DNA of 64,000 nucleotides from the NCBI RefSeq assembly GCF_052425735.1, contig NC_135763.1:29326001-29390000 (forward strand). Direction: 5' to 3'. The translations under genes and the position numbers were made by a program. Under the pieces are notes generated by a model, which had not been told where the DNA came from, searched no databases, and was given only the letters and a program-made list of their open reading frames with translations. Below are positions 5,804-29,430 of the stretch, in pieces (position 1 is the first letter of the stretch; every line of letters starts with the position of its first letter). Source of the DNA: Oculina patagonica (lineage: Eukaryota).

Positions 5804-6038
5804 TAGAGAGATTAAGCTTGACGTTATATGGCAAACGGCAAACGCAAGCTGGCTTTTCATTTTGCTACCTTTTTATCAAATTATTAAATCAATCCATTAT
5901 AAATAAGGGAAACATTACACATTCACTCCATAACAGACAAAAAACTACTCATTTCCACGTACGAATGCCAAACGGTAGACGGCAGAAGTTGCGTTTTTGC
6001 CGTTCGCGGGAAAATAAACGTCACGCTTAACCTCTCTA
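5804..6038. mobile_element. MITE, TA-flanked (Tc1/mariner-type)
   Basis: TIRs TAGAGAGATTAAGCTTGACGTT ... AACGTCACGCTTAACCTCTCTA. Confidence 0.7.
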
Positions 6039-6364
6039 AAAAGCAAAGAAGCCGCTCGTAAAAGTGTGAAGGCAATTTACTTAGTTGTGAAATAGAAGTT
6101 AGTTGCACATAGCAACGGTATATAATAAAATTTCCTAAACATAAGAACAGCATCAACCACCAGAAGAGTCACGGCATAACTAGAACGGGAAGTTTTGGCT
6201 AAAACAGCACTTGCGTAATTCATATATATTCCTCAAAAGATCATTCGACTTTAGAATAAAATTAATATTCTCTATTGTCAAATTGTAAAAGCGAGGCTTC
6301 GCTATTTAATATTAACTAACGACTTCCTCTATATTTTGCTGCTGTTTTTTTTTTATTCGTTATA

Positions 6365-6680
6365 AGGGACGAGCCGGGCTGGCCCGGTTACCCGTGACTG
6401 GTACGGTTAGCTGGGATGACTTCCAGCCCGTTAATATAATGAGCCGAGCCAGCTCGGGATGGATTAGGTTTGGCACGAACGGAGGGTTAAATTTAGCACG
6501 AATGATTTTGGCGCGACGAATGAGTCAGATGATGTTGATGCCAGAAAAATTTCAGTAATGCTGGCCCGGTAAGCCGGCCGGGCTGGCACGGTGAACATCA
6601 CGGTTACAAGGGAATTTTCATTCCGGCTTCGTGATACCGGGATCTTAGCAAACCGGGCTGGCCGGGTTGTCTTGTAATTG
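6365..6680. repeat. GC-rich interspersed repeat with reiterated CCGGGCTGGCC motifs (probable MITE remnant)
   Basis: GC island in AT-rich DNA, with the motif repeated near 6374, 6578 and 6653. No clean TIR or TSD seen. Confidence 0.4.
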
Positions 6681-9289
6681 ACAAGATCTCGACAAAAACC
6701 GAACCAACGGGGCTCTTGTAATGCCCGAAACAAGGAGCCATCAAATTTTATGCTATGAAAAGGGATATTTAAGTTCTCACAGAATGCCAGTTGCTTCAGT
6801 TTAAGAATAAAAAAGTACATATATCTAGTAGGCAAAGTTTAGAGTATTTTTTTAATCTTCTTCGTGCTTTCCTTGAAATTACATTTCGTGTAGTTTAGCA
6901 CAAATTACTTAGAGTTGGAAGAATCAAACGGGTAATTACCGCTAGAAACACACTGTTCAATTTACACGCGAAATGTACCATATTTCAAAAAAAAAAAAAA
7001 CTTCCAGTCTAGGAATATGCCGCGCGCTTATTCTTTGTTTTCGTTAATTTTGTTCGATTCAAGTGGAGCAGGCCTGACAGTGTTTACCGAATAATACGTG
7101 GATCGATGTGCTCAATTTTCACACAGAGCATATTTCACACTTTATTTGACTATTCCTTATAAATGAAAAACAAACAGGCGGTTGTGATTGTGAAAAACAT
7201 GTTTACACCTAGTTGTCATCAAAACATTGCTCGTGTAATTACTTTTAAGGGACGAGAAAAAATTCCATCGAAAATGAAAAGCGACTTTACTCCACCCTCT
7301 AAAAGAGACCGTATTAAGCTGAGCCCAAAAACAATGCGATAAAAACTTATCAAACCTATACAAGAATCAATTAGGTTTTTTTCAATTAAATTTTACTAAA
7401 ACGTCGACCAACTCAAAATTCAACTTAGATAACCGCCGACAGTTTTTGTGACCATTTCTTTTCGTACTAACGACTCGATTAGGCACTAAATTTTGGGAAA
7501 CGAGCTGAAATTACCCTGGCCTTCGAGGGAGATAACATTTTGGACCATGTTATGACAAGTAAAAATGTAATATAACTCACAAAAAAAATTGGATTTTACT
7601 TAAGATCTGTTGCAGTGGGAGTTTTATCGGTACAAGTGCACAATAACTGTTTTTTTTAACTCTCGCTCCTTAATGACAGATATTAAAACCCCAGAGATAC
7701 AAACTTTTTTAAAACGAACTTTTTAAATTGAGAAATGTCACAAAATTTAAAAACTGGGCAGTCCATTTCTGAAAAAAAAAAGACCAGCTATTTTCCCCAT
7801 TGTATATATTGAACATTAGATGTAAACGTGTTTAAATTGAGACTCGTCAATAGAAACTCTAGGTAGTTGATATTGGGACTGAAAAAGGCAAGACAACAAT
7901 TTTAATGATGCATTTTTCACATTCTGCAATAAAGTGAATTTGTTAAATGTTATTCAGTACCGAAAAATGTAGCATGAACCATCCGAAGCTTTGATCCCGT
8001 TGTCACCTGCCAGCCAGATAAAGTACTGCTATCACAATAACAAATAAACGAGATAATTCTTCGGTTCTTGCACTTGGACACAAGCATTTTAAAAGTACAG
8101 TTTTATCATCAGATTAAAGGAAAACTTAAAGTAATAGTTTTGTTAGAAAAGAAGAAAAGTATACATCATTAACTAAATCTTAGTACACTGGGAGTACACT
8201 GACTTGTACAAATAACACAAATCTGGTTTTCAGTTTCGTCGCAAAAATAGTTAAAATTTTCTTATTTTTAGTCCACTGCTTTGGAATTTCCTTTTTGGAA
8301 TCCCCTGTAACCAAGTTGAAGTAGGTTTACAACGTGTAACGTCTTAATACCCCTCTGAGAAGTATTTACTTTGTTTGAAACCTCCTCCGTCAAAGAAGTA
8401 CCTGACCATTACTACGCTACGCGCCTTTAGGAAAATATTTCTTTTACAGCGCTTACGTGTTTAACGTGAAAAAGCTTTGTTAAAAAAACGGGATAATTTT
8501 TTGGTCTAGTTCACGTTTGAGCACGAGCATTTGAGTTAAGTTTTATCAGGAGAGAAGAAGAAAACGTCAAGTGACAGTCTTGGTAGAAAAAAGAAGAAAC
8601 ATTACCACGCTAAGCGCCCTAAGGTAAATGTTTTTTTTTATTATTTTTTTTTTTTTTCTACAGCGCATACGCGTTTAATGACTCTGCACGTAAGTTGATA
8701 GTTTTCGAAACGTTTCCTAGCCGACCTTCTGAATAACAATCCACGCAATATGGTTAAATTCTGGGTTTCACGAATTGGAAAATTTAAACAATCAGTTATT
8801 TCATGATAATTGTTATATCCTAATTTTGTCAATTTTCTTTAGCAACACGTGTTTAATTAGCTTCTTCTGCATTTATTTGTCTTCCATTTTAAGTGTATAC
8901 AAGAATATAAATTATGTTTGTGTTCAATAAACAAAGAAAAGTATGTTGTCTTTTAGGGTAATTACTATTTTAGCCCACTAAAGTTGAACTGTTTTAAGGG
9001 TTGAAACGCTATTTGTCGTGCGAAGTTAACAAAAATAGAGAATTGATTATAGAAAGTACATGTATTCATGGAAGTCTTTTACTAAGCTTATATCGTTGTT
9101 TTATGAATTTAGATGTATTACGTGAAAGTAACTGGAGTGACCAACCATTTGATTTCCTTAGTACAAGCGCCTATCTTGTTAAGAAAAAAATTGACTTCAC
9201 TTTTCTAATGGTTATATACTATCAATCAAACTTGTGAGATAATGGAAACATTAAAACCGTCTCTTTATTCTATTTAAACAGGAAACTTA

Positions 9290-10095
9290 GAAAGTCTGTA
9301 GTGATTTTAATTTTTCGAAAGATTGTGTGTAACGTTAGCAAACAGGATTAAAAAGTAATCTTTTAAAATCTGATGGGTTTGCCAAAACGAAAATCAGTTT
9401 TGTTAGATCCTGACATCTGTAAGACACGTTAATTAATCTAACCGACTGGGAAAGGAAGGTAGACCATTACCTTTAGTGCTTCGATAATTGCTCTTTAAAC
9501 ACCGTACATGTAATAAACATGAATGTGCATAAAAAAATGTGCTACATGTCGGAAAAGTATTTTACAGTTAAAACATTTGTTGCTCCAAATACGAAGCTTT
9601 AATTCCCCAGTGGTGCTAATTTTACCAGCAAGATAGTTTTTTCCTTTTCAACTTTGGTGTAAACGTCTTTAAGGAACATGGAAAAGAGCATAGATAAACA
9701 GCAGTTAAAATGTTTAGGAATACTTTGTACGCGTCCGAACTTAAGCAAACATTAATTAAAATAAATTGTTAAAAAGTAACCTTTTAAAATCTGATGGATT
9801 TGCCCGAAAAATCGTTTTTGTTCGACACTGACATCTGAAAGACACACGTTAATAAATCTAACCGGCAGAAAAAAGAAGATGGACCATTACTTTTAGCGCC
9901 TCTACAATTGCTCTTTAAACACCTTACAGGTGATAAAAGTGAATGTGAATAAATGTGCTACATCGGGAAAGTCTTTTACAGTTGAAACTACTGTTGCTCG
10001 AAAGATGAAGCTTTCCCCAGTCGTGGTAATTCTATCAGCTTTTCTTGCACTCTCAAAAGGTAAAATGTTTCTTATCAAATAAGGTGTTTAACGCT
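9290..10095 (+). repeat. Two tandem ~420-bp promoter + exon-1 units; the upstream unit carries a dead signal-peptide exon
   Basis: Anchor TTGCTCTTTAAACACC at 9488 and 9908. Unit 1 has ACG (9591) in place of ATG and AT in place of the GT donor; unit 2 holds the live exon 10005-10059. Confidence 0.85.
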
Positions 10096-13000
10096 ATTCA
10101 ACATTTTGCAGTAAGACTTCGTGTGGAGAGCCGAGCACCATTCACAAAATTCTAGTTCTCAATTAACTTGAATTTTTATTTAAAATAGAATGAATCGAGG
10201 TTCGTTTGTTATGTTTGAGACTTCAAAAAAAATCTCAGTCACTAAACAGCAGCTTCTACCAAAGACAACTCTTGTTTTATTGGCTTTGAGGGTCATTTGT
10301 TAAGGAGTGCAACTGTCTTCTGAAAGGCTTTAGTATTGAAAAGAAAGAAAAGAAAAAGAAGGCTAAAATTATACAGCTTTTGTTGATCCTATCTTGGTTC
10401 TCAGTTTGTCTTATTATTTATAATAACCAGGCCTCCAAACTGAAAATGTTTATTGAAAAGTAAGAATCGGATCTCGAAGTTTCTTTTAATTCACTTCAGT
10501 AGTGGAAAATGGAAAATCCGAAGCACATAAGCTAAAATGAAACTTATACAATCAGCAATTAAGTAAAGTAAGTCAGAAAATCGTTCTTTTGCCAAATTTA
10601 TCATAAAAAAGAAACAAAATCACTAAGGAAATCTGAATTTATCCTTTAAGGTTGTGGCAGACGTCACTTCACCTCTCGCGTCGTTGGCGGAGAGAATGCA
10701 CCTAAACATTCCTGGCCATGGCAGATCTCACTGCGAATGCGTATCGAGGGCCAGCTGAGGCACATCTGTGGCGGTTCCCTGATCGGTGACCAGTGGGTGG
10801 TGACAGCGGCGCATTGTGTCGTGAATGAACAGGACCAACCAAGCAGTCCTGATATGTTTACTGTTGTAGTTGGTAAGAAAATGATTCCCAGCCTTGATAA
10901 CCTACAGTTTAACGACGATGACGACGACAACGACGACGATAACAACAAAAACATTACGACAACTAGTTAACTTTATTTTCATGAACATAAATTCAAGCAG
11001 CATTGTATACAAAATTATTAACTTTGTAATTGCAACACACTAAAATATCACTTACAAAACGAATACTTAACTGCTTAACTTAAAAACCCACATTACAGTT
11101 GCATACACAAGTTAAACTTGTTACATTATTACTTACAATACCAAAACATGATTACTTATGCCCCCAATACTAGTAAAGAATACAATTTAGCAAGTTAATT
11201 TAAACGTAAAAATGTGCAAATTAATAAAAAAAAACTTTTAGAGAAGTTCGGCCGATTCATCTACCTAATGCTTTTTATTGTTCACTGGTAGATACTTGTA
11301 TTTACTTGGTATTTGCGGTGTAATCATTTCGATGGAAAACGCCTCCTAACTTAAGAGTGTGAATCAGTCAGAAGAAAATTAATCTTAATACAAACTGGGT
11401 TTTTGTGCGATTTCTGATTTAGTAAAACGCTATATTTTATCCGAGTAAGATAACACATAAAATAATTACAATTAAATATAAAATAATGGAAGCTTTAAAA
11501 AAGTTCCATTAGTTAAATAACACTATTTGAAAAAATTAAAATAATCGCCGCTCTTTTAACTCCAAAACTTGAATGCATGATAGAGAAACTGCACTATATC
11601 AGTAAAGCATACTAATATATTATTTTTTACCTGTGTAGGTGCACACGAGCGACTTGGCACAACCGATGTACAGCAAGCGATAAAAGTGGAAAAGCTCTTT
11701 GCTCATAAGAGCTTTAGCATGCAACACCTGAGAAATGATATCGCCCTTTTGAAACTAAGCACACCGGCAAAGCTTAGCGACAAAGTAAATACTGTTTGCC
11801 TTCCAACCCATGGATCGAGAATTCCTGACGGGCACAAATGCTATATAACAGGTACGGTGCTCAGGCATATTTATAGCTTGTGGTTAGCGTTCCATATCAA
11901 TATATCAATAATCACAAATTGTTATCTTTTTATTTAGAAACTTAGGTATCCCTAGTGGGTTCTCGCCTTTTTTATATATAGAAAAAACATCTGATATGCT
12001 TCTGGACGCAATTTTAATCAATGCTTTAGAAGGTTAGAGTACCTGCTGTGATACCAAATTTAGTGTAAATTAGCAGTGTCTCACCTGTTTGGTCCGAGAT
12101 TGTGGTTTGCACTTTGCATAAGCACAAGCAAAAGCATGAACACGAATAGCAAACGCACCGCATTAACTTTATGCCGTCAATACAAGGCCTGAGCGAAAAT
12201 CATAAACGCGAGAAACTATTGTTCGTTCTTATTGCTCATTCTTATTTATTATTGTGCTCATTCTTCTGAGGTCAGGTTCCTTTGTCTTACACATTTATTT
12301 TCTTGCCAAATTTTGTCTAGGATGGGGGTTAACAGAAGGTGGCGGTAACGTGGCAGACATCTTGCAACAAGCGATGCTTCCCGTACAGAACCCCGACACA
12401 TGTTCTAACGTGAACAGCCCTCTGGGACCAGTTGACGAGGCCACTATGATCTGTGGAGGAAGTGGCCAAGCCAACCAGGCCGGTGGTTGCCAAGGAGACA
12501 GTGGTGGGCCGTACGTATGCGAGGAGAGCGGAAAGTGGGTTCTGCGAGGGGCTGTGAGCTGGGGACATGGCATGTGCATCACTGAACACTTCACGGTCTT
12601 TTCACGAGTCAGTTCCTTCAGGAACTGGATCGACAACAAGATGGCAGGTGAAAGTGAGTATCAAGCAAGCATCTGAATAGTGTGACCACTTTCAAGTTCG
12701 GTCATTATACAATTGAAAGCCGGCTTCAGCTTCTAGTTGACATTTGATTGGATAAAAAATGTAAAATGTGAAATAATTAACAGTGATCACTGTACTCTTG
12801 TGGACTCCTTGTTCTAATATATTAAGATTGCTGTCCGACATTTAATGTTGTCTGATCAACATCGTAAAATTGTGGACAATTCAAATAGTATAATGTATTT
12901 TGAGCCGGAAAATGTACACGTAGAATCTGTGTAGCTTTAATTCCCTAAAAGTAAATTTAATTTTAATAACCTCCACAATGTTTTCGTCTTAAAGTTGTCA

Positions 13001-13961
13001 GCGATCGATCTGGGCGATCCGTTGCTCTAAAAAGAGTTTAATCATCATACGCATGGCAGATTCTGCAAAAGAATGACCGCGAGACATTGGACTTAAGTTG
13101 ACTTTGTCCCTATTTTAACAAACTAGAAACTTCCCTTGGCTAATAACAAACATTTTGTATTTTTTTCTTTCATTTCTCTAGTTACCAACCATTATTTTGA
13201 CCTCGTTACCTCTTTGCGCCATGGGACGCATAAGGCCTCGTAATTTCTTACCAGTTTTATACCAAATATTACACTAAACCTTCATTGGCGCTCTCAAAGC
13301 ACCGCTCTGTATACGAATTTTAAAGACAATGTATGGGAATGCGGGAAGTACACTCCAAATGCTATTTTTGAAAATAAATTTCAATTGAAGTGACTTCCTT
13401 TTTTTTATTGGGCCAGCTTTAAGCCAATAAGGTGATTTATACCTTCTTGGGTTTTACTCCCATTTTGCATACGTTGTCTTGACAATTTAGATACAGAGCT
13501 CTGGCCGCCTGTTCCTATTCTTCCGGGCCTGGGTGGGAGTGCTTGAATGTCAGTTATCAATTAAATTTAGCCATTTCTATACATTTTGGCCCATTTCTCA
13601 GCTACCAATGAATTTTGCAGCTTTCAGATCTTAGCTATCAAGTAAAAACGCGCAATTTATCAGCTGACAGTGAACAATTTTGACCAATTTTCACTTATCC
13701 CTGATAAACCCCGTGCAGACCCTCATTCTTGTAACGCATTTTATTTACAACTCTTTGACATCTCTTCTTCTTAATTTTACTTTCAGCTGGTGAAGGAAGT
13801 GGGGCAGGTTAGTATATTTGGTGACACTACTTTGAAGTTTTTTTTTGTTGTTGATGTTGTTTACGAATTTTAGTATTTCCGTGAAAACGGACACATAAAT
13901 TTTTAAAACCACGAACGATATCAATCGGTTGATATTTTCTTTGTTTGCAGCTCTGGAGTAA
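10005..13961 (+). CDS. Secreted chymotrypsin/elastase-like S1A serine protease zymogen (predicted 284 aa)
   Basis: Exons 10005-10059 ([19 protein letters not shown]), 10651-10872 (CGRRHFTSR|VVGG...TAAHC), 11639-11851 (NDIALL), 12321-12653 ([10 protein letters not shown]...VSWG...HFTVF), micro-exon 13787-13807 (TGEGSGA), 13951-13961 (ALE*). All GT-AG and phase 1; triad intact; G189/G216/T226, so not trypsin-like. AATAAA near 14037. Confidence 0.92.
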
Positions 13962-15069
13962 AGACACTGCCTTCTTGGTGCTTCAACAAAGAAAAAAATG
14001 GCATGATGCAATGATTCACTGTAGCGTTATAGAATGAATAAATACGGAAGATGCATTGACGTCAGTGTTGTTTGAATTGATACTTTCCATTTAGCTTTAT
14101 TAAAATACTGTCACTGGCTTATCTTTCCGAAATGGAAAAGTCATGAAAAGCAGCAAGAGAACTTAGGTATGCTCTATTGATACGAGTGGCAACAATGATA
14201 TAAAGTGTTACAAAACCTCAAAATCACCGTCTATTTAGCCCTGTCGTTTCCCAGTCGTGCTCTGAAGTAAAAAAAACCCAACAATAAAACAATTAAAGAT
14301 AACAAAAAATGGGCCGAAGAAAAAAAAAAGGGGAGGGGCCGAAGTAAAACGGAGAGCTTTGATTACTGCGAATAGAAGTCGAGGAAACAGTGAGGGTTAC
14401 CCACTTCACTGTGCAGCGCCCGCGCAGCAAGCAGCAATAATTTCTGCGTAGCGGGTAGGGGTGCTGGTTGTGGTAGTGGTGGTGGTGGGGGAGAGGGGTA
14501 TTTAGGGGGTTATACACGAATAAGTAAGTGTCAACCAGCTTGGGGTATCTGTGGGCATGCTCCCAAGGAAAACCGGCAAATGCATTTAAAATTAAGAAAA
14601 CCGAACGTTCAGGGCTTAAAATATGGTCAGGCACCGTACGTTTTGGAAAATGTTAAAAAAAATGTTGATGTTTCTACATTTAATATGTCAATGTCGAATT
14701 ATCTAAGGCTACTTCAGGATTACATTTATTACTAAAATTCTCTTCTGAGGGGCGAGCATACCTTTCAAGGAAAAGGCGTGTTCATTGTCGAATTTAGTTG
14801 CTAAAGGTACGATTTCATTTTCATTTTTGGAACAGTGAACTTGAAAATGTCTTTTCTCTTTTTATTCATTCTGGCATCTCTGTAAATACTGGTACTTCAA
14901 CATGATGAGGAAGGTTTGTGTCTTGATGTGGTCAATGGGTAGTTTTATCGAAAGTTTCGTGGAGCAGCCACGAAATGGCATTTCGTTATTGCAACATTTT
15001 ATCTTTTTAAGCAATAAGTTTGCAACAATATTTAGCCGAATAAATTTAAAAAAATCAGAAATATCTTGC

Positions 15070-15175
15070 CGTCCCATCCAGGGGGGAGTAGAAATACCCC
15101 TCGCGCTTAATGCTACGGAAACAGGGAAAAGCTCCGTGCTGATTGGCCGCTAGGCTCGCATGCAGACTTAACCTA
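15070..15175 (+). mobile_element. 3' fragment of SINE family 1
   Basis: CCCATCCAGGGGGGAGTAGAAATAC...TGCTACGGAAAC matches the reverse complement of the 44941-45235 element. Confidence 0.65.
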
Positions 15176-15344
15176 CCACACTTATAATAAGATATTTCAA
15201 CGTTACATATGCCACATTCGTATCACATTAAAAATAAGATGTTCTATCGAGAGTGACCGTACTCCAGCATTTTAGCAGAGTCATTTTACTTACTTTGCAC
15301 AGACAAAAGTTGATGTAAACTTGAACAAACTTGGTTTTGATTTT

Positions 15345-15725
15345 ATGAAATGAATATATGAAATTCATATATTTGTACTGCGGATATACATTTTAAGCAA
15401 ATGAAAGATCATCACAGTAATGAACTCAACTAAAGCAGTCAAGAAAAGCAAGCCTGAAAAATCAGGCTTGAACGGGAATCGAACCCAAGCCCTCTGCGAT
15501 ACTAGTGCAGCGCTCTAACCAACTGAGCTATCAAGCCAACTGGGAGCTGGTCACTTGCGAGTTCGTATCCTCATGATACCCGTGGACGGAGAAGATATGA
15601 AATGAATCTATAAAATTCATATATTTGTACTGTGGATATACATTGTAAGCAAATGAAAGATCATCGCAGTTGTGTACTCAACTTGAGTTGAGTTCATTAC
15701 TGCGATGATCTTTCATTTGCTTAAA
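15345..15725. repeat. Composite repeat: ~253-bp-period direct repeat enclosing a tRNA-like cloverleaf, ending in a long hairpin
   Basis: ATGAAATGAAT.TAT.AAATTCATATATTTGTACTG...AAGCAAATGAAAGATCATC occurs at about 15344 and 15597; 15647-15724 folds back (TAAGCAAATGAAAGATCATCGCAGT...ACTGCGATGATCTTTCATTTGCTTA). Confidence 0.75.
15465..15537 (-). tRNA. tRNA-Thr(AGT)-like sequence, probably repeat-borne pseudo-tRNA
   Basis: GGCTTGA TA GCTC AGTTGGTTA GAGC G CTGCA CT-AGT-AT CGCAG AGGGC TTGGG TTCGATT CCCGT TCAAGCC: perfect 7-bp acceptor stem, A and B boxes, one mismatch each in the anticodon and T stems; embedded in a repeat. Confidence 0.45.
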
Positions 15726-15839
15726 TTTGGTTTTGGTTTTGTCAAAGAAAAAAAATATGAATCACAACATCTTTTTCTTGTTTTAATCCACTTTAAAGTT
15801 TACGGCATTCGATGTTTTGTGTTCTTCTTAGATGCATTT

Positions 15840-16020
15840 ATATAAGTACTGGCATGATTCCGAGTGCAATTTGGGATAAATCAGCACGAGTAAGTTTTTC
15901 AAAGTCAATCGAAATTGCAGGAGCCCGTAGGGAAAAATCAATTTGTAGTCTTTAAAAAAAATTTTAGGTCCCGATTTATCCCAAATTTTACGAGAAAAAC
16001 CATGTGATAACTTGTTAAAT
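15840..16020. repeat. Hairpin-type interspersed repeat (MITE-like)
   Basis: AATTTGGGATAAATC (about 15868) is inverted as GATTTATCCCAAATT (about 15973). Confidence 0.5.
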
Positions 16021-16760
16021 CCAGATGTCACTATGGAATTTTAGCGCCCTCTTTCATTCATTATCACGTGCTTTTATCATCATTCGGTTATATATATATA
16101 AATGGGCTTAAATGCACCACTTCAATTCATGCTTGTTATCTTCCTTCTTTACAAGCTGTAGCGAAAGAAAATCCTCGATTTGTAACTTTCGGTAGTTTCG
16201 TAAAGCCTCTCTTGTGCTGCACAAACGTCAAAGTGCTAGTACTATAGTTTATAAAATTATAATTTTCGTTAAATCGGTCAAACGTGGCATGAATAGATAC
16301 GTTGTTGCGCACTTTTTGCTCTCTCAAACCCTCCGACGGCGGCCGTTATTTTGTTTTGGTGTTTTTCCCTGCGACTCCCCACCGCCAGCCAAATAGTTTT
16401 GTACTTCATTTTCCATTTGGCTGGCATCTCATTCAATGGGGACAAGAAAGTCTTAGCTGCTTTATGCTATAGTATTAAGAAAAAAGCTTTGGCAATGGGA
16501 CCCTTTGGCTTAATGCAATCTTAAGCTCCATGTTTTTGTCAAGGTGAAATCTTGTACAATCCTTAAGATCAATGAAGCCAGGTGGATCATTAAAGTGGAC
16601 TTAGCTCCACCCAAGGGGCATGTGAGAAATTTCCATCGACCGTGCTGTGTATATTGGGGAGACTGGCAGCAGGATGCAGACCGTTTCAGGGAACACCGTA
16701 GGGATGTGATCAACGGCAGGAATGTCCTTCCTGTACCTGCACATTTTAACCATCTGGATC

Positions 16761-19700
16761 CTGCCTCGTCCCCAGGCGCCGATTGGCCGGACGTTGAGGC
16801 GGTAAGGCGGGAAAACAGGGAGCGCGGGGATTGATGGTTAGGGAGCGAGCCGCGGAGCGCCTGGCAGATCTTGCATTCAATATGGCGGACCAAAATGTCA
16901 TCAACCCTGAAATGTGTATTAAAAACAGCAAAAGAGCCGTCTATTTAGCATTTTTACAGCACAGAGCGCCTTGGACACATCTTTTATGAAAAATATTCTT
17001 ATTAAGACGACGGACTTCACCACCATTTTCGCACGCTTCATGTCCCAGCTCAGCTTGAGAAGAGCCAGGAGGAGCATACGAGGCACTCTGTGAAGTTAAA
17101 AAAGCTTTAAATCCTTTACGGCAAAGAGACGTTGAAATGTCTAATGACATTTTCCGAACTCCAAGAGAGACAGGTACTCATTTCCGTTTATCGAAGTTGT
17201 CTTGTAAATCCGAGTGTAAATGACAAGAAAATTAGTTATCCTTTCCATTGTTTTGTGTAGAATTTTTTTCGTAGAGCCCGAGAGTTAGTTGCCTTTTAGT
17301 TATTCCATGGACGCTCATTTAAGCCAGACGCGACAAAAATAATGCAACAACAGTATGAATCCATCGATACAAATAACAATTCATCTGTCTTTGGGATGTC
17401 ATTTCTACTATCTCTGGTTTACTTCAATTAAATGTTAATTATCTGCTTATCAGTAATCAAGCACAACCTTTGATAGTTGTTTTATTAATTGAAAATAAAA
17501 ATTACATTAAAAATGTTTGATATCATAACTGTAATTTTTTTCAATGCAATTTTTTTTATTGATTGCCAGTAGGTGACTTTTTTCCCATTAAACTACAATT
17601 TATTAAGGATAAATACACATTTTTTTTGTTAAGCATTGTGGCAGTGAGTCTGCCATTTATGCTGTGAATGCAACTGAGGCAACTAAATTGTTTGGAATGT
17701 ACCCTATGCCATGCCATGCAGGCTTTTAATTTGGGGGCAGGTGCAGAGAGCATTTCTGATGAATGTGACACTGTTTCCATGAAGTTTTTAGAATGGTTCA
17801 TGTGCGGTATATGATTTAAGATCATCTTGAAATCTTGCTTTGTAAAAATGGAAAGATAATTTTTCTCATAAATATTTATGTATTAATATGCAAGGCTAGC
17901 ATCTTTGGACATCCAAGGCCCACCATCATTCTATTCTAAATAACTCTAGTAACAAACCCCTCTTAATTTTTTATCACTCTCCTGTAATTCTTTACAAATT
18001 TAAAATAGTACATGTATTTGTAAAATTCTTTACTTTTTTAGCAACTGAAAAGAAATGTTTACTTTGTGCTTGCAAATTTGGTGTCTAAAGGCCTTTGTTA
18101 TGCTCCCACTGACTTGATATTAACTAATTACAAAAGGAGCTGGGGTGAACTGTACATGGAGGGTTGAAGAGGGTAGTAAATCACTTTAGAAAATCAATCA
18201 AGTTAATTTTCAGGAGAAGGCTAACTATTATGTCCAGATCATAATCAGATGAAGGGCACCACCAAGGAAATTGTCGTACAAACAGTAATCCTCAGATTAT
18301 CTCATGCACAACTTATTTAAATTCACAGTAGGTTAAGGCCATGCAGGTAAAACCCTCCTGGCTAGATAACTTTTGCAAATTGAAGGGAAATGTCTGAATG
18401 GTTTTGCAAAATCAGTACTACTAAAAATATTTTTAAAAATGTAAAAAGGTATCTTTTTCTCTTACAACAGCTGTTGTCATGTGTATAAAGCAGCAGGGTA
18501 GGCAAAGCACACATTCAACATTTAAAGTGTTTTAATTGTTTTCCAAGACTGCTAGAGGCAGTGGGCTATTAGCAGACTGGGGAAAAAGTGGCAACTCCAG
18601 GTTTGCCGGTTTATTTATTTTAATCAAATTGAATATGGTTAGCCAGGAGTTGCCATGTTCACATCAAATGCATTTAAGAGTCAGTAACAAACTCTTTGAT
18701 GTAAAATTGCCTGGCATCTCAATTTATTTTCCTACACTATCTCAGCCATAAACTCTTGGGCCGGCAAAAATGATTTAAGTTTTGCTGTCTGTCATAGTCC
18801 AGTGTTTTGTTACCCTTAGGAATAAAGTTTTGCCACACATTCTCTAAAAACACCTACTTAAAAAACACTCCCTGTGACACTACAACTAGAAAAAACTATA
18901 TTTTTTTTGTTACAAGTTTGTCAAAGTCTTATCCTGCTTAAATCCTCCAAAAGAGTGACCAAAACCTTATTTCTCCTTACAGTATCAATGCATTATCAAG
19001 CAGTACAGTGACGAGAAACACACAAATTAATCAGCGGAGAGTAATTTCGATATTAACACTTGAATCAGTAAAAAGAAATTTTGAGTAGGATCTGCCTCCT
19101 CTGGTCACTAACACATTAAGTGCTGAAATAAACAGAACTACGCAAAGTTGAAATTTCAATAATTGTACTTTCTGTCAAGAAAGGTAAATTATGAGGTTAA
19201 CCTAGCTAGAATTAAATATCAGCACACATTATAATTGTTTATGTGTCATGTTCTCATAAGATCTCCTACGTTGGACAACATTAATTTGATAAAACACTTG
19301 TTAGCACTTGAACGGCTCTCTCTGGAGCGCTGCTTATAGACTTTATAGCTGAAGTTTAACGGCCAAGAGGTACAAATAAAAGTATACCGAAATGTAAGGA
19401 AGCTAAGCACTGCTCAGAAACGAAACAAACCAGCTCTGGCATCGATTGAAGCGAAACTTACCCTCAGTTCGAAGCTTATAAAGAAATTTAATTTTCTAAC
19501 GACGGCAGATATTCTTTACCCTCCGCCATTGACGATCTTCTCGCAATCAAAGTGGGATTTTCTCTGTTCAATCTTCTGCTCAGATTTCATATCATTTCTC
19601 CGGATAAATCGCTGATTTTGAGCTAGATTTCCCGCCAACATTAGATTAAAGCAAGGGGACCCCCGCTTTGCTGAAACCAGCCTCAGTGAACGCTGAAAAG

Positions 19701-19999
19701 AATCGGCTCGATAGAGAAACGAAAACGATCCGAAAGGCCGTCAAAATCCCCATGTTGACAGTACTAACTTCCACGTAGCTCCCAGTGTTGATTTCTTGAC
19801 CGTTAAACTTGTTAAAAGCGCTAAAACGCCTTTTGACGAGAAACCGAACATTTTTGCCAAGAAACTGAACAGGATCTGCCAGGCGTCCGCTTCCCCGTCC
19901 GCATCAGGCCCAGAACGCCAAGCGAACCGTGCACGTCAGTCCCACAACACCAAGCGAACCGTGCACGACCAAGGACGAGGACGCCTGGGGACGAGGCAG
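16761..19999. mobile_element. 3239-bp non-autonomous DNA transposon, 18-bp perfect TIRs, 9-bp TSD
   Basis: CTGCCTCGTCCCCAGGCG at 16761 and CGCCTGGGGACGAGGCAG ending at 19999; ATCTGGATC at 16752-16760 and 20000-20008. No intact transposase ORF seen. Confidence 0.9.
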
Positions 20000-20174
20000 A
20001 TCTGGATCACTCCCTGCAGGATATGGAGGTCGCTGTCCCGTGAAGGCAGGCCTGGTTAACCAACACCACCGAAAGAAACAGGGAGAGCCACGACTTCAGC
20101 TTCACGTGAATTGACTTCTTTGTCTTATCGCGGCAACGTTCGCTTATGCAACGAACTTTTTAACGGTAAAACAG

Positions 20175-20218
20175 TTTTGTCCCCTGAAGAAGGCAGCATT
20201 GCTGAAACGTCGGAAAAA
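20175..20218 (+). ncRNA. Minimal type-I hammerhead ribozyme-like motif of a Penelope-like element
   Basis: TTTGTCC..CTGAAGA A GGCA-GCAT-TGCT GAAACGTC GGAAAAA: CUGANGA and GAAA cores, short stem II, palindromic ACGT stem III, TCC/GGA stem I. Confidence 0.5.
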
Positions 20219-21689
20219 TTATTTTGACTACAACGTGGTATTTACCTATTTTGTCGTTCATGGACTTAGCTCCTGTAACATGAAGTGACTAGGAGAAGTT
20301 ACGTTGGGTTTGGAGTCAAACGTTCCCACCAACATATTGAAAGTCCACCGTCTAAATTAGACTAAAATTTCTAATTTCTACTACCATAGCAAAAACGTTT
20401 GATTTTTCTTTGATCTGATGAAGAAATCTCTGGTAGTACCGGAACGATCACTAATCCATCAAGAGGAACAGGCCCTGCAATATCACTGACACAGCTCACA
20501 CAGGGCATATTTTACCATTTATTTTACATTGCCGTATAAATTAAAAACTAAAAGTCGCGATTATGAAAAGCATGTTAAAACTTAGTTGTCAAAAATACAC
20601 TACTCGCATAATTTAGTTTATGGCGCGAACGAAATTCAATCAAAAACGAAAAGTGACTTCGCACCACCCTTCTAAAACGCACCTTAGGCAAAACCCGATA
20701 AAATTTTAAATTGAATCTCACAAAAAAAATCGACCAACGTTGCAATCGAAATCTACCCAGTATCAGCCAAGATAACCACCGAGAGTATATATGACTGTTT
20801 GTTTTCGTACTAACCAGCTAACGACCACATTAGGCAATCTTGAGAAACGTTTTAATGTATCTCTATTTTCGATTGCGATATACCCTTCGAGGGGGATTAC
20901 ATTTAAGACATTTTACGGAAAATAAAAATGTAGCTGACAAGAAAATTTTTTATATCGTTCACGATCTGTCGCAATGAATGGACGTTTTATCGGTACGAGT
21001 GACGGTGTAACATACTAGAGAACGCTACTAATACTGCTTCTTTTCATCTTAAATTTCGCTTCTCAGTCACTATTATGAAAAACGCAGGGATACATCAATT
21101 AAAATAAACTTGTTTAAATTAAAAAAAAATGCGCTTAGCATCTCTAAAGACGAAAGGAAAGTCATTGCTTTACGTGGTATGTATTTAACTCTTTGCCGCA
21201 TGTTTTTGGCGTAAAAAATAACATGAACTGGAATAATCCAGATCTATATAATTCCCGTTGTACATTTTTCACATCCTTCAAAGAAGAAATTTGCTTACCG
21301 CATGTCAAGGGTTTAAACATAAGCTTTAATCTCGTCGTCACTTGCCAGCAAGATAATGTACTGTTATCACAATGAGAAACGAGACGATCCTTCGGTCTAG
21401 CTTGAGTTAAAACATAAGATTTTAAGTACAGATCTATAACGAGAGTAAAAGAAGTTAAAATAATTGTCTTGATAGAGAAAAAAAAAAGAAAAAAAGAGCA
21501 GAAAAAGGTGGATACTCATTAACGAAATAGGAATGGGCCGGAAAGGATTGTACAGAATTCTCGCAAAATTGGTTTTGCTTCATCAAAAAAAAAAACATTT
21601 AAATAGCCTAGATAATCCCTCCATTTTTAAGCTAGGAAGTGGCACTTTTACACGGTTTGATGGCTGATGTGCTATCGAGATGTATTAAC

Positions 21690-22465
21690 TTTCATTGAAA
21701 CCTCCTCCGTCAAAGAACTATTTGACCATTTAAGTAAATACTCTTTGTGCGGTGCATACACTTTTAATGTGAATGAAGATTGAAATGGCTCTGCAAGTGC
21801 GTTTGTAACTTTTTGTAACATTTTCTGGCCGTCCTTCTAAATAACAACCCACACAAAATTGTTAAATTCTGAGTTTAATGGAAATCTTACCCAAACGCTA
21901 ATTTCGTGACAATTTTGATACCTTAAATATAACTTTGACAATTTCTTTTAACAAAACCTGCTTGGTCAGTTTCTTCTACTTTTCTTGTGTAGAAAAATAA
22001 ATATAAATTAGTGTTTGCGTGCATGTTCAGGTAACAAAGCAAAGTCAGTTGTCTTTTTTTGTTTAACCTCCTCCATCAAAGAAGTATTTGGCAATTATCA
22101 CGCTACACCTTTTTAAGTAAATGTTTTATTGCACAGCGCATACACGTTTCATGTGATTGAAGACTGAAATGGCTAGCTCTGCACGTGCGTATAAAATCAT
22201 TTTTTGTAACATTTTTTGGACTTTCTTCTAAATAACAACACACGCAAAATGGTTGAATTCTGAGTTTAACGGAAAATTTTAGCAAACTCGCATTTCGTAA
22301 TAATTTTAATATTTTTATTTTGTCAATGTTGTTTAGCAAAATTTGTTTGTTCAGCGTCACCTAGTTATATTCGTCTTTCATTTTGCATGTCTATATGAAA
22401 CTAAATATTAAAAGCTTTTGCATGCGTGTTCAGCTAACAAAGCAAAGTAAGTTGTCTTTCACAGT
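21690..22465 (+). repeat. Tandem duplication (~366-bp period) of a conserved upstream block
   Basis: AACCTCCTCC.TCAAAGAA.TATTTG at 21699 and 22065; homologous blocks at about 8379 and 37560. Confidence 0.75.
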
Positions 22466-22779
22466 AATTACTGATTTAGAGCACTCTAGCTGCGCTATTT
22501 GAAGGGTTAGAACGCTATTTTTCGAGCGTCGACGTTGACAAATGTTTAAAGGAAGTGGTTAAGCAAATTTACTAGGTATTCATGGTAGTCTTTAACTAAG
22601 CTTATATTTCTTATTTCTGAAGGTAAAGTAACATATGCATTCATTCAATTCACTGAAAAAAAGCCCATCTTGTTTAGAAAAAAAAATTTAAATCATTTCA
22701 GTCCTTATTAAACTATTAGTCAACCTCGTCAGATAATGGACACATTTGAACGGACTCTTGAATTTATTTAAAAGAGGGA

Positions 22780-24755
22780 CATGGACTATTTGCAGTTAAA
22801 ATGTTTCAAAATAGTGCATGTAACTTTAGAAGACACAATTTAAAAGTAACGTTTTAAAATCTGATACCTGAAGTTTGCCCACCAAAAAATCAGTTTTGTT
22901 CAAAACTGACATAATAACACAACAGTCAATAAATCTAATCGACTGAGAAAGGAAGATGAACCATTGCTTTTAGTGTTTCAATAATTTTCATTTAAGCACC
23001 TTACAGGTGATAAACGTGTACGTGTACGTATTAACGTGCTACATCGGAAAAGTACTTAACAAATAAGCTTACTGTTGTTCCAAATATAAAACTTTCCCTG
23101 GTCGCAGTAACTCTGGAATTTTTAGCACTCTCCACAAATAGTTTTCTTGTTATTAAGTGAGAGTCAACGTCCTTTAAAAACATAAGAAAAGAAAAACGTA
23201 GAAAATCTCCAGCTATAATGTTTCGAAATAGTACATGTAACTTTAAAAAACATAATTTAAGAGTAACCTTTTAAATTCTAATGGGTTTACAAAAAAAGGA
23301 AACTGTTTTGTTCGACACCTGACATGTGAAAGACACAAGGTAATAAATCCAACTGACTCAGAAAGGAAGATGGACCATTACTTTAAGTGTTTCGATAATT
23401 GTCATTTAAACACCTTACAGGGGATAAACGTTAATGTTAATAAACGTGCTACCCCGAAAAAATACTTTACAGTTAGAACTACTGATGTTCCAAATATATG
23501 GGTTTGCTCGGTCGTGGTAATTCTAAAGGCATTCCTAGTAGTCTCCTAAGATAATATTTTTTTCTTATCTATTAAGGTGTTAACGTCCTTGAAGAACACA
23601 AAAAAGAACATACGAAATATTGCGTGTAACTTAAGCAAACATAATATATGCAACCGTCTAAAATCTGATGGTGACATCTAAGAGATACAAGTTTATAAAT
23701 AAAAACGACTGGGAAATGAAGATGGACCAATACTTTTAGTTTAAGTGTTCCGATAATTGTCATTTAAACACCTTACAGGTGATAAAAAGGTATAATGCGT
23801 GTATAAATGTGTTACATTGGAAAAGCCCTTTACATTCAAAACAACTGATATTTCCTAAGATAGGTTCCCGGTGGTAGAATTCCGACAGCGTTCCTAGCAC
23901 TGTCTTGAAATATATTTTTTTTTTCTTAAAACTAAGGTGTTAACACCCTGAACATAGAAAAAAAGGCAGAAAATCTGCAGTTTTAATATTTTAAAATATT
24001 GCGTGCTACTTAAGCAAACATAATTAAAGAATAACCTTTTAAAATATTATGGGTTTGCCAAAAAAGAGATCATTTTTGTTCAATGCTGACATCTAAAAGA
24101 CACAAGTTAATAAATCTAAACGACTGGGAAAGGAAAATGGACTATTACATTGAGTACTCATATATTTTTCATTAAAACACTTTCCAGGTGATAAACGTGA
24201 ATACGCGTATAATTATGCTATATTGGTACAGTACATTTACAGCTAAAACTACTGATGTTCCAAATATATAGGTTTCCGCTATGGTGGTAATTCTGATAGC
24301 ATTCCCAGCACTTTCCTGGGATTTTTTCTTCTCAAATAAAGTGTTGACGTCTTTTAAGAACATTGAAAGAAGGTGGAAAATCTGCAGTTTTAATTTTTCG
24401 AAATATTGCGTGCTACTTAAGCAAACATAATTACAAAGTAACCTTTTAAAACCTTAAGTGTTTGTGTTTGTCACTCTTTGCGATGCTAACATCTAAAGGA
24501 CACAAATAAATAAATCTAACTTACGTGGAAAGGAAGATAGGACACTTCTTTTAGTGGTTCCAAAATTGCCATTTAAACACCTTACAGGTGAAAAATGTGA
24601 GTGTGAATAAATCTGCTACATCGGAAAAGTCCTTTGCAGTTGAAACTACTGTTTTTCCGAAGATGAAGCTTTTCCCGGTCGTGGTAATCCTGACAGCATT
24701 TCTAGCCCTCTCCCAAGGTAAAATGTTTCTTGTCAAAAAGGTGTTACCCTCTTTA
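22780..24755 (+). repeat. Five tandem ~360-415-bp promoter + exon-1 units; only the last exon copy is intact
   Basis: Anchor CAC(C/T)TT(A/C)CAGG at 22997, 23411, 23769, 24178 and 24578. Each unit ends in a homologue of the signal-peptide exon; units 1-4 lack the GT donor. Confidence 0.88.
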
Positions 24756-25579
24756 ACACTGTTGTAGTTATTTGTACTTTGCAGTTCAAGGAGTGAGTCT
24801 GTCTTCCAAATGATACATTTTTTTATTGCTCCTCTTTTGCTACTCAAAAATCACTTAAGCCTGGTTTTCACTAGCGACGCAAGCACAAGCGCAAGTACAA
24901 GCACAAGGATAACCACTCTTATTTCACCGTGAAAACTGCTTCAAGGTAAGCAAAAGCACAAGCGTATTGTATTTTAATGCTTCTGCTTTTGCTTGCCGCA
25001 AAATTTGTCCTTTTAGCGTGATTCCGCTTGTGCTTGCGTCGCTGGTGAAAACCAGGCTTTATGAATAACCAGGCTGTCTTTTATCAAACTAAATATCTTT
25101 AAGGAAAAGTACGCTTCAGAGCTCGAACTTTTTTCAAATTAATTTTAGTAGAGGAAAATAAACACTCCAAAACACATAAGGTAAAATAAAATCTCGTCAA
25201 CAAATAATGCCTTTGTCGATCTCAGCACAGACGTGGAACTTAAGGCGTCAGAAAAGCGTTATTTTGTCTAATTACCAAAAAATATGAAATAAAATCATCC
25301 AGTAAATCTTAATTCATCCCTCAAGGGTGTGGCAAACGTCACTTCGCTTCTCGCGTCGTTGGAGGCGTGGATGCCCCTAAGCATTCATGGCCATGGCAGA
25401 TCTTACTGGCAAATAATAAAATGAGGAGGTATTGTGGCGGCTCTCTGATCAGTGATAAGTGGGTGGTGACAGCGGCGCATTGTGTCACGGATCAATGGAA
25501 TGGGCTATTCAGTCCTGATATGTTCACCGTAGGAGCTGGTAAGTAGATGATTCCCAGCGTTGATTACCTTCAGTCTTTT

Positions 25580-25619
<40 letters not shown>

Positions 25620-28600
25620 GCGAACACAACAACTAGCTCTATTCGCATGATCAAACTTCAAACAGTACGTATTGCAAAGAGTCCGTTTTTTTATTGCAAC
25701 ACACAGATATAGTACTTACAACACGAATACGTACTTATACTGCTTACAAAACTTACACTAACTTTCACTAACTGCAATATCGTCACACTATTTGCAATAT
25801 TATTACTTACACAACTTATAAACGAAAACGTTTACCACAATTTGGGATGTGATTTTTCCAATTGTCAATTATTTTGCTGAAAAAACTCGTCCTGCTAAAA
25901 GGCGAATATAATACAGAAGATGAGAAATTAAAATACAGAATAGGTTTTTTGATTGAACAGATTTCTGATTGACTAAAAGGCCTTTTTATAGTTAGATAGA
26001 GCCTAAATATTAAATTAACAATTAAATATGTATAAATGAATAAGAGCAACACTGCAGTTCCATTGGAAAAATAGTTGTTTCCCACAAATAGATACACTAC
26101 CAATGATCGAACCCCTCCCCTATAAAACTCGGGTTTCCCTTCCAATAAACTATCCTTAACTTGACCGTTAATACGTTTATCTAGAAATCGGTTTCTCTGC
26201 ATATTCTTTATCTTGGGCAGATACAAACAGAATAGCCAGGCTAGACCTTTTTTTAAAGTACATTCAGGCTTTTGTTTTGTTCATTATAGTATGCTAATAG
26301 CTGCTTTAACCTTTGTAGGTTTACACAACCTATTTGAAACTACTGATGTGCAGCAAATGATAAAAGTTGATAAGATCTTTGCTCATGAGGGCTTCAGCTA
26401 TGCACACATGAAAAATGACATCGCCCTTTTGAAACTCAGCACACCGGTAAAGCTTAGCGACAAAGTGAATACTGTTTGCCTCCCAGCACAAGGTTCCCGA
26501 ATTCCTGACGGGTACAACTGCTATATCACAGGTACGGTGTTTAGAAAGATTTATCTCATCTTATGGGGTTTACCTATATGTGTGCGTATATCGCGAATTA
26601 ATGATCATTTTGTTCAAAAACTAAAGTCGTGCATTGGCATGCTTTAAATGAATTTCAAAGACAGAGATCACTTTATCTTTTTTCGAAACCGTTCTACTTT
26701 TTTTCGAAGTGTTTTCTTATGTATCATCTTTGTATTTCCTCTTCATTGTACATATCCTTTCTAAGTATACATGGCTCGCGAGCTAATGTCAATATCTCAT
26801 AATCATAAAGCTAGGTCAACAGCTATGGTCATTTTTTGTTCTTAAGGCTGATTTTCATCACTTGGATTAAGCAAGGACAAAAACATAAGCGCGTGAGCAG
26901 AACAAACGCACTCAATCCCGTTTGCTGTCGATTCTGAGCGAATAGGCAAAATCATAAACACAAGAAACCACAGTTCATTGCTTTTGCTCATTTGCTTCTC
27001 TTCCTATGACAAAAAGATCGAGTGTTCGTTGTTATAATGCGATGATGCGTATTCTTCTGCTTATTTCCAGTGAAAACCAGTCTTCAATTCCTTTGGCTTA
27101 CACATTTCTTTTCTTGCCAAATTTTGTCTAGGATGGGGGGTAACAGAAGGTGGTAACATACCACACATCTTGCAACAAGCCATGCTAACCGTGCAGAACC
27201 ACGACAAATGTTCCAAAGTGAACAGCGCTGTGGGTCCAGTTGACGAAGCCACCATGATTTGTGGAGGAAGTGGCCAAGCCAACCAGGCCGGTGGCTGTAA
27301 AGGAGACAGTGGTGGGCCGTACGTGTGCGAGGAGAGCGGCAAGTGGGTTCTGCGAGGGGCTATGAGCTTGCGCTATGGCAAGTGCACCACTGAACACTTC
27401 ACGGTCTTTGCACGAGTCAGTTCCTTCAGGAACTGGATCGACGACAAGATGGCAGGTGAAAGTAAGAACATGTATCAAGGAAGAAGATAATTCACACCCC
27501 TAAGTACAGTTATTATCCAATCAAAAGCAGAGGACTTCTTACAGTTGACTTTCGATTGGATAATACATACCAAAAATATTGTGGGATATCAGTGATCACA
27601 CTTTTGGACTCATTCCTCTAACTTATTTAGATCGTGTCCGTATCCGATCAAAATTATAAAATTGTGGAAAATTCGATATAACACAGGCAGCCCAAGCTCT
27701 CTATTGGATTACCTTTGGACGTGACTTTTGCTTTTTAGCGGTGTTGTGTTACAAAGGTTCGATTTTTAAGGTTTGTATGGGAACGTAACGGTTTTGCTTT
27801 AAAAGTAAAAAAATCGTATATTTTGTGAATAAAATTGACTTACCCTGATTTCGTGTTTCCTTCTTTGCTGTTTGCCAGCTTCTCATGTCGATATAGCAGT
27901 GGAAACCAAAAATAACGATAACTCGCCGAAATCGCGTTAGATCGACCTGAGAAGCTGGCAAACAACAAAGAAGGAAACACAGAATCAGGGTGAGTCAATT
28001 TTATTGAAAAAATATACGATTTTTTTACTTTTAAAGCAAAACCGCTGCGTTCTCATAGAAACCCTTATAAATCGAATCTTTGTAACACAACACCGCAAAA
28101 AAGCAAAAGTCACGTCCAAAGGTAATCTCATAGAGAGCTTGGGCTGCCTGTGGATAAAACAATGCATTTTGAGTCGGGAAATGTACTCGATTTCCTGTTA
28201 GTGAATTTAATTCCAATTAATATAAATTTACATCAAGTATTTCTTTTGACAAGTACAATTCAGAAATGGATGGCCTCGTCAGCGGGCGATTTTTGTATTT
28301 CTTATAATGGCTTTAGTTACCAATCATCCTACCTCATTGCGCCATGGTCACGCATCCTCGACCTCGCTTTGTATATAGCCAACTGGTCTGCCTCCTGCCA
28401 GTTGGGATTTTTAGCCTTGTTATGTTCATTTATAAATTATTTGTTTCCTCTGTTTCAGTGGCATGGCTGTAAACTACAACGTAGCTATCTCGTTGAGATA
28501 TGAAACTAAGTGCATGACCACTACAAACACATATTTTTTTTATTTTTTTTTTAAGTGACTCACTTTGTGTTTGTTTTGTGGCATTTTAATCTCTTAAAGC

Positions 28601-29396: not shown

Positions 29397-29430
<34 letters not shown>

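Follow-up and report, generated by a model that had tools for sequence, protein, structure and literature searches.

The region analysed here (hereafter the window) is a 64,000-nucleotide stretch of the genome of the coral Oculina patagonica (NCBI RefSeq assembly GCF_052425735.1, contig NC_135763.1, positions 29,326,001 to 29,390,000 of the forward strand), in which the promoter and first exon of protease genes are present in tandem copies. Three plus-strand paralogues were found in the window, each a four-exon chymotrypsinogen-like S1 protease gene, with the start codons at 10005 (gene A), 24663 (gene B), and 42007 (gene C). Exon 1 of these genes is a 55-nt signal-peptide exon of phase 1. The translated exons contained the catalytic triad motifs TAAHC, DIAL(L/I)KL, and GDSGGP, as well as the activation site SR/VVGG (CG.RHF.SR/VVGG) after the signal peptide, and the family PF00089 was assigned to the exon 4 product of gene A, to the window product P0001, and to homologues. 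Judged by these features, the gene bodies are chymotrypsin-like S1 serine proteases (PF00089). Protein homologues included 'chymotrypsinogen A-like' and 'B-like' proteins from Montipora capricornis and Nematostella vectensis. Cnidarian chymotrypsinogen/elastase-like S1 proteases have the same signal peptide, activation site, triad motifs, and PF00089 domain, and the proteins encoded by genes A and C showed no unusual features; compared with the homologues of other corals that we examined, only the 5' architecture differs. Literature searches returned no description of this locus and no Oculina genome paper covering it.

The 5' ends of genes A and B are repeated as units of ~410 bp, each running from ~320 bp upstream of the ATG through the 5' untranslated region (UTR) and exon 1 to ~45 bp inside intron 1. 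Using nhmmer with a unit profile, we placed two contiguous, in-register units at gene A, one disabled (dead, A1) and one intact (live, A2), and five at gene B, four dead (B1–B4) and one live (B5) (Table 1). The same numbers of promoter plus signal-peptide-exon units had been proposed in a first-pass annotation of the window. Raw identity between the seven units was 67–78% over ~400 columns, and B3 has an internal deletion of ~60 bp. Both arrays were found by repeat search and blastn; at default settings, Tandem Repeats Finder (TRF) detected only an array at gene C, because the copies at genes A and B are too diverged. The flank/B1, B1/B2, B2/B3, B3/B4, and B4/B5 junctions were all spanned by short-read DNA contigs of a second sample (X4), with ~0.65% differences.

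A start of the type (C)GAAGATG or GAAAGATG together with the donor AAG/GTAAAATG was present only in the last units, A2 and B5, while none of B1–B4 has an in-register ATG or a GT donor. The lesions of the dead units are shared. At the start site, CCAAAT followed by ACG or ATA was found in A1, B1, B2, and B4, and B3 has CCTAAGATA there. The G of the donor is replaced by A or another base in all five dead units. In A1, the start site reads CCAAAT-ACG, AAGATA replaces AAG/GTA, and the signal-peptide part contains a 4-bp insertion and a deletion. The restriction of a working start and donor to the last unit, the CCAAAT state in four of five dead units, and the common loss of the donor thus all stand as the first-pass annotation had described them.

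Table 1 Features of the protease cassettes, gene bodies, and related arrays. Positions refer to the window, except for the orphan arrays (genome coordinates).
Feature	Position	Strand	Evidence and details
Dead cassette A1, gene A (promoter-like sequence + pseudo-exon 1)	9282..9680	+	nhmmer 354 bits, profile columns 7-411; sequence
Live cassette A2, gene A (promoter, 5'UTR, exon 1, ~45 bp of intron 1 start)	9683..10108	+	nhmmer, sequence; exon 1 coding sequence (CDS) 10005-10059 (18 residues, phase 1), donor GT at 10060
Gene A body, chymotrypsinogen-like S1 protease	10651..12676	+	exon boundaries from AG/GT sites and reading phase
Gene A exons 2/3/4	10651-10872 / 11639-11851 / 12321-12676 (stop TGA 12674)	+	AG/GT sites, phase
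~390-bp tandem duplication, distal upstream of gene B (two copies, ~71% alike)	21699..22459	+	repeat families D11, D16, D20; blastn
Dead cassettes B1-B4, gene B	22772-23183, 23189-23599, 23613-23952, 23958-24363	+	nhmmer, sequence, DNA-contig junctions
Live cassette B5, gene B	24365..24764	+	nhmmer, sequence, RNA contig joint; exon 1 CDS 24663-24717, donor GT at 24718
Gene B body, exons 2-4	25326..27490 (approximate coordinates)	+	splice joints in RNA contigs: exon 2-3 25537>26318, exon 3-4 26529>27130
Gene C tandem array (405-419-bp units, ~3.8 copies, 78% alike)	40338..41885	+	TRF, blastn, nhmmer
Gene C single live cassette	41798..42090	+	nhmmer, sequence; E-box CACCTTACAGGTG at ~41927, exon 1 CDS 42007-42061, donor GT 42062
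Gene C body	42785-44940	+	sequence
Orphan cassette array, no protease body	G000:C6:30428447-30429819	-	
Orphan cassette array, no protease body	G000:C6:30442954-30444022	-	
Orphan cassette array, no protease body	G000:C6:30507762-30517690		

Cassettes of this kind are not confined to the window. A genome search with unit A2 gave at least 40 matches, a lower bound since only the best candidates were scored, and all of them lay between 29.33 and 30.93 Mb of one chromosome of the 529-Mb genome. Running nhmmer on the fetched regions resolved ~45 units in at least seven arrays within 1.6 Mb, head to tail within arrays; at least 13 of the units are truncated. Besides the arrays of genes A and B, at least five arrays of the same unit sit 1.0–1.6 Mb from the window, at 30.32 Mb (R1), 30.43 Mb (R2a), 30.44 Mb (R2b), 30.51 Mb (R4), and 30.93 Mb (R6). 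Six units precede a protease gene at R1 and ~9 units at R6. R2a and R2b are on the minus strand, and R4 consists of several blocks on both strands. In every array, the gene-proximal unit alone has GAAGATG and AAG/GTA, CCAAAT and AAGATAGTT are common to the upstream units, and the donor GT is absent from 26 of 26 full-length upstream units. CCAAAT and the G>A donor change are common to dead units across six loci. Many dead units in the R loci nevertheless keep an ATG and the 18-codon signal-peptide frame.

No protease body was found after the R2 or R4 arrays by tblastn with the gene A exons, and the open reading frames listed there offered nothing convincing. Capture of these arrays by new genes was therefore set aside, and we treated them as orphan arrays. 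R2a is a partial copy of R1 that stops 450 bp into intron 1. In two of the orphan arrays, the last unit is of the live type (R2_10823 and R4_19311), with ATG and GT donor still in place; from their sequences, these arrays may be dead-end partial duplications or may act as promoters for something that we did not recognise.

The distribution of the units also bears on whether they could be a satellite or mobile element that merely lies close to these genes, or result from misassembly. They are repeated and AT-rich with a period of ~400 bp, and three different duplications of ~400 bp occur in the upstream regions, as such an origin would predict. However, all of the matches fall at paralogous loci within 1.6 Mb and none is dispersed, the unit is the gene's own promoter and exon 1 and runs collinear with an orthologous region that is single-copy in another coral, and the unit junctions were confirmed by independent DNA contigs. 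We rejected these origins on the grounds of the localised matches, the collinearity, and the X4 junctions, and consider their remaining probability negligible.

To establish how the units are related, we built an unrooted maximum-likelihood tree from the 32 units with at least 300 columns (6 live and 26 dead), or 33 units when the cassette of the coral locus L044 was added. All 26 dead units formed one clade, with supports of 98/98 for 32 units and 99/98 with the L044 unit, which itself nested among the live units with B5 and A2. The live/dead split was retained without the start and donor columns (85–89/91–92) and was recovered, weakly, on the promoter part alone (35/73). The hypothesis that the R6 units form one clade was rejected (p = 5e-54), as was one clade of all seven window units (approximately unbiased test, p = 0.00065; p = 0.059 without the diagnostic columns). 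With genes A and B alone, clustering by gene was disfavoured and not rejected (p = 0.07–0.17), and the unit with the smallest raw distance to A1 is A2 (0.22). The tree thus supports the descent of the dead units from one dead ancestor, and a single dead clade argues that they were not made locally from A2 or B5. The first-pass annotation had expected dead units to cluster across genes; this held genome-wide and less firmly for genes A and B by themselves. Clustering by gene with independent decay was not what we found, given the single dead clade with its shared CCAAAT and donor change.

Two sequencing runs were treated as RNA, as their contigs contained GT..AG joints and had no depth over introns. 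One RNA contig joined the live exon 1 of gene B to exon 2 (24713>25322, GT..AG, cut +4; run X14), and further joints linked exons 2–3 and 3–4 (Table 1), although RNA contigs or reads cannot separate the gene B body from a 98.7% identical copy at 28599–31558. In the assembled contigs of the two runs, RNA depth was zero over 22477–24423 (the dead units) and over introns; provisionally, the dead units are without transcription. A low RNA-like contig depth (~2) was seen in X14 at 22300–22476, upstream of the array, and at 24424–24600, upstream of the start presumed for the live unit; it may reflect a weak upstream transcript, carried-over genomic DNA, or noise.

Repeated promoters and first exons in front of a single exon 2 are the layout expected if the upstream cassettes were alternative promoters or first exons, or if they drove read-through transcripts with long leaders. 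Clustered protocadherins and UGT1A have such a variable-first-exon gene architecture. Like those clusters, the Oculina arrays are tandem promoter and first-exon copies from local tandem duplication, here two (gene A) or five (gene B) units before single exons 2–4. TATA-like A/T boxes remain in the dead units, and the signal-peptide frames kept at the R loci would also suit this use. Against it, the GT donor is gone from every upstream unit, the dead units of the window lack an in-register ATG, and dead units were neither covered by any RNA contig nor spliced to exon 2 in one, in contrast to the live exon 1, whose joint with exon 2 was observed. The missing donors exclude spliced use of the dead exons. 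Unlike the variable-first-exon clusters, in O. patagonica only the proximal cassette can splice, and the upstream cassettes derive from one donor-less copy and provide no alternative first exons. We therefore rejected alternative-first-exon use, and regard any role of this general kind as very improbable.

How the dead lineage came to lie at so many loci can be read in two ways, namely inheritance with the gene duplications or spread by non-allelic exchange. Three groups join at one node of the tree (window-live units with L044, R-live units, and dead units), and as the tree is unrooted, it does not place the dead lineage before or after the gene duplications. Synonymous divergence (dS) of the gene bodies was 0.35 between genes A and B, 0.34 between R1 and R6, and 0.63–0.94 between window and R genes. 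The corresponding unit distances were ~0.33 for A2–B5, 0.23–0.27 for window-live versus R-live units, 0.41 for B5–L044, and ~0.3 for dead units of different loci. These distances did not scale with dS; the ratio of unit distance to dS ranged from ~0.26 to ~0.94 between locus pairs. Between R1 and R2a, identity was 98–99% in the dead units, 93% in the live unit and proximal intron, and 85% farther on. Mosaic identity of this kind, together with distances that are not clocklike, suggests that the arrays have exchanged sequence through non-allelic recombination or gene conversion.

Homologous loci of other corals bear on the same question. In at least five other coral assemblies, nine homologous loci were examined, and none of them has an array. 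One full live-type unit was found at L044/L045, L048 and L043 matched in the core promoter and exon 1 only, and no unit match was obtained at six of the nine cross-species loci (L046/L047, TARA scaffolds L049–L054, L055–L058). L044 is syntenic with the upstream region of gene A (dS to gene A, 0.60), and its single live unit favours exchange over a dead unit older than the gene split. Both readings of the spread are viable from the sequences, and the mosaic identity, the non-clocklike distances, and the L044 locus favour exchange. The first-pass annotation had placed the origin of a dead unit before the separation of genes A and B; a single dead lineage was indeed recovered, while that timing is not required, exchange between arrays being the second reading. 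The arrays may be specific to the Oculina lineage, with the dead unit traded among paralogues; alternatively, an old array may have been lost by other lineages.

The upstream regions contain further duplications. The gene C array, whose unit had no other occurrence in a whole-genome search, consists of a distal upstream segment, next a homologue of the flank of gene A at 9190–9275, and lastly unit columns ~26–155 (TTAAGCAAGCAAAAG ... CTGACATCTGAAAGAC). It is independent of the gene A and B arrays and differs from them in register, and it is without core promoter and exon 1. It overlaps the forkhead-like and GACATCTG parts of the unit. A separate ~390-bp tandem duplication lies distally upstream of gene B, and gene A has one copy of this segment at ~8677–8954.

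We next considered whether the dead units drift or are constrained. Sequences like CACCTTACAGGTGATAA and GACATCTG, which the first-pass annotation had assigned to each unit, occur in seven of seven units of genes A and B, several in degenerate form. The E-box part of the former is kept in other corals: the inverted E-box CACCTTACAGGTG is conserved in the live promoters of L048, L043 (dS > 1 to gene A), L044, and gene C, and its conservation across coral live promoters marks it as a real element. The GATA half, present in Oculina units, was dropped as a conserved site, the other live promoters having GTTAG, GTTAC, GAAAA, or GTTAA there. A PTF1-type bipartite site (E-box plus TC-box) was also considered and dropped, as a TGGGAAA-like sequence lies ~60 bp from the E-box, which is too far for such a site.

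Dead and live consensus sequences differ at only ~7 of 413 columns, and conservation of the majority base was 0.8–0.9 along the whole unit, pseudo-exon and intron stub included. The mean non-consensus rate in dead units was 0.136, with 0.133 in the pseudo-exon and 0.134 in the intron stub; the gamma shape parameter was 3.2–3.3, and the substitution profile was nearly flat. The CAGGTG E-box was kept in 14 of 26 dead units, against a chance fraction of ~0.42 (0.864^6) predicted by the 0.136 rate, and GACATCTG was kept in 6 of 26. Unit subtypes follow one another in different orders at different loci. The array and a mostly intronic gene region diverged from the second sample by 0.65% and 0.99%, respectively (14 versus 21 differences, not significant). 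Motif loss and substitution in the dead units are mostly neutral-looking, with mild extra conservation of the E-box and forkhead-like blocks.

Taken together, these arrays are probably best explained by a 5' cassette that is prone to duplication, with disabled copies that drift, decay, and pass between paralogues by exchange, and with selection keeping one live copy per working gene. This process would have begun with tandem duplication of the 5' cassette (proximal promoter, 5'UTR, signal-peptide exon 1, and ~45 bp of intron 1) in the chymotrypsinogen-like family. In one early copy, the start context of the live type would have been lost (CCGAAG>CCAAAT) along with the splice donor (GT>AT), and this single dead lineage may then have grown and shrunk by unequal crossing-over. 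It would have reached at least six paralogous loci within 1.6 Mb by inheritance with gene duplications, through non-allelic recombination or gene conversion acting between arrays, or in both ways. The one intact cassette beside each working gene would be kept by selection, with mRNA made from that cassette only, and the dead copies would be mostly passengers that drift and decay, as the truncations, the orphan arrays, and the near-uniform substitution suggest. The duplication and exchange mechanism and the near-neutrality are what we infer from these patterns. Copies of real promoter elements are still present in the dead units, which may therefore contribute some binding of transcription factors upstream of the genes.

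Several observations weigh against this account. The absence of RNA over the dead units rests on assembled contigs of two runs, and contigs drop rare transcripts; a poly-A run of raw reads (X20) yielded 13 reads, all on an intronic repeat, and is uninformative on transcript starts. Between the window and the R loci, dead units are 2–3 times less diverged than the synonymous sites of the attached genes, which exchange explains, but which constraint would explain as well. Among the dead units, 43 columns are invariant against 12 expected, and conserved columns cluster (maximum 12-column window 0.93 versus 0.889 in permutations, p = 0.0025). The best 12-column blocks are ACTTAAGCAAAC and AAGATGGACCATT; GCAAACA within the former fits the forkhead core RYAAAYA. 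The E-box block has the lowest non-consensus rate in the dead units, 0.091 versus the mean of 0.136. In addition, gene C independently amplified an overlapping distal segment, and this could reflect selection for extra copies of it.

Alternatively, the dead cassettes could be kept by selection as a promoter-derived, factor-recruiting enhancer array whose unit number would set the expression of the digestive protease, as the first-pass annotation had proposed, each unit adding predicted binding sites (E-box CACCTNNNAGGTG, forkhead-like GCAAACA, and AAGATGGACCATT). The clustered conserved columns and the well-kept E-box block would fit such an array, and so would the amplification at gene C of a segment with the forkhead-like and GACATCTG parts. 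By carrying CACCTTACAGGTG, the dead units multiply an element that is conserved in live promoters, and dead units are full length and 72–78% alike across loci, while most of the intron between the same paralogues no longer aligns. Nevertheless, dead units retain exact motifs at close to the frequency expected under neutrality, and conservation is no lower in the pseudo-exon and intron stub than in the promoter part, a pattern that indicates recent common ancestry or exchange and not constraint on particular sites. The orphan arrays, the truncated units, and the shuffled unit order between loci look like drift, and the homologues in other corals work with one unit. Such an enhancer array is therefore a tentative reading of the sequences, and a doubtful one.

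There is precedent for such arrays. In ribosomal DNA (rDNA) intergenic spacers of Xenopus, Drosophila, and others, promoters are duplicated and their number correlates with growth rate (PMC1215480; spacer promoters, PMC12326227). The Oculina arrays resemble these spacer repeats as head-to-tail copies of a gene's own promoter upstream of the functional one, with a number that varies between loci. Unlike the rDNA spacers, which serve RNA polymerase I, have experimentally shown enhancer activity, and give rise to spacer transcripts, the Oculina arrays belong to protein-coding genes of RNA polymerase II, their unit takes in a coding exon as well as an intron stub, and they are known from sequence. 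Promoter repeats of 34 or 46 bp (TR34/TR46) raise cyp51A expression in Aspergillus fumigatus (PMC5146965, PMC4954732), and an enhancer repeat of Penicillium digitatum CYP51 is cited in PMC4336317. What these have in common with the Oculina arrays is that a stretch of promoter with factor binding sites, predicted ones in Oculina, is multiplied in tandem. The cyp51A/CYP51 repeats are 34–126 bp long, recent, nearly identical, and under strong drug selection, whereas the Oculina units are ~410 bp long, 22–33% diverged, and common to many paralogues.

A stronger form of the enhancer reading appears unlikely to us: a selected device in which an RNA polymerase II gene family would carry rDNA-spacer-like arrays of its own disabled promoter, recruiting gland-cell factors at the E-box and forkhead-like site, with unit number tuning output. 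As part of it, unit number may be altered by unequal crossing-over and shared by exchange, and the amplification at gene C may be a convergent solution. If the dead cassettes are enhancers, polymerase II genes would have their own equivalent of the promoter-derived repeats in rRNA gene spacers, and a simple copy-number route to altered expression of a secreted enzyme. If the dead cassettes are only passengers, they would be a clean example of gene 5' ends duplicating, dying, and being traded between paralogues in a coral genome. For genome annotation, they are a warning that pseudo-first-exons with an ATG and a signal-peptide frame can lie upstream of the real start.

Other repeats were noted around the protease genes. 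The gene B body, from intron 1 to the 3' flank, is tandemly duplicated (24781–27767 versus 28599–31558, 98.7% identity), and the second copy is without a 5' cassette of its own. Repeats of 84–99% identity flank the duplicated body, one pair inverted (27682–28072 versus 32943–32553) and one direct (27762–28355 versus 32553–33146), and these may represent a mobile element or mark where the duplication broke. A very high-copy repeat lies within intron 1 of gene B at 24778–25131, with a summed contig depth of ~200,000 in a DNA run and 4,000–20,000 in the RNA-like runs and with many loose ends beginning at 24853–24857 and 24895; it is probably a small transposable element. Minus-strand pieces resembling protease exon 2 (55–60% identity) occur at 246–419 and 57505–57633, with no cassette of the gene A/B type close by. 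A 268-bp repeat with 90% identity is present directly after the gene C stop codon (44942–45206) and near the window start (1333–1600), with an inverted partial copy at 45522–45741, and is probably a dispersed element. Finally, an AAC/ACA microsatellite is located at the start of intron 2, in the same place in all paralogues (~10930–10960 in gene A, 25580–25633, 29397–29444, and 43035–43077), and its shared position indicates that it predates the gene duplications.

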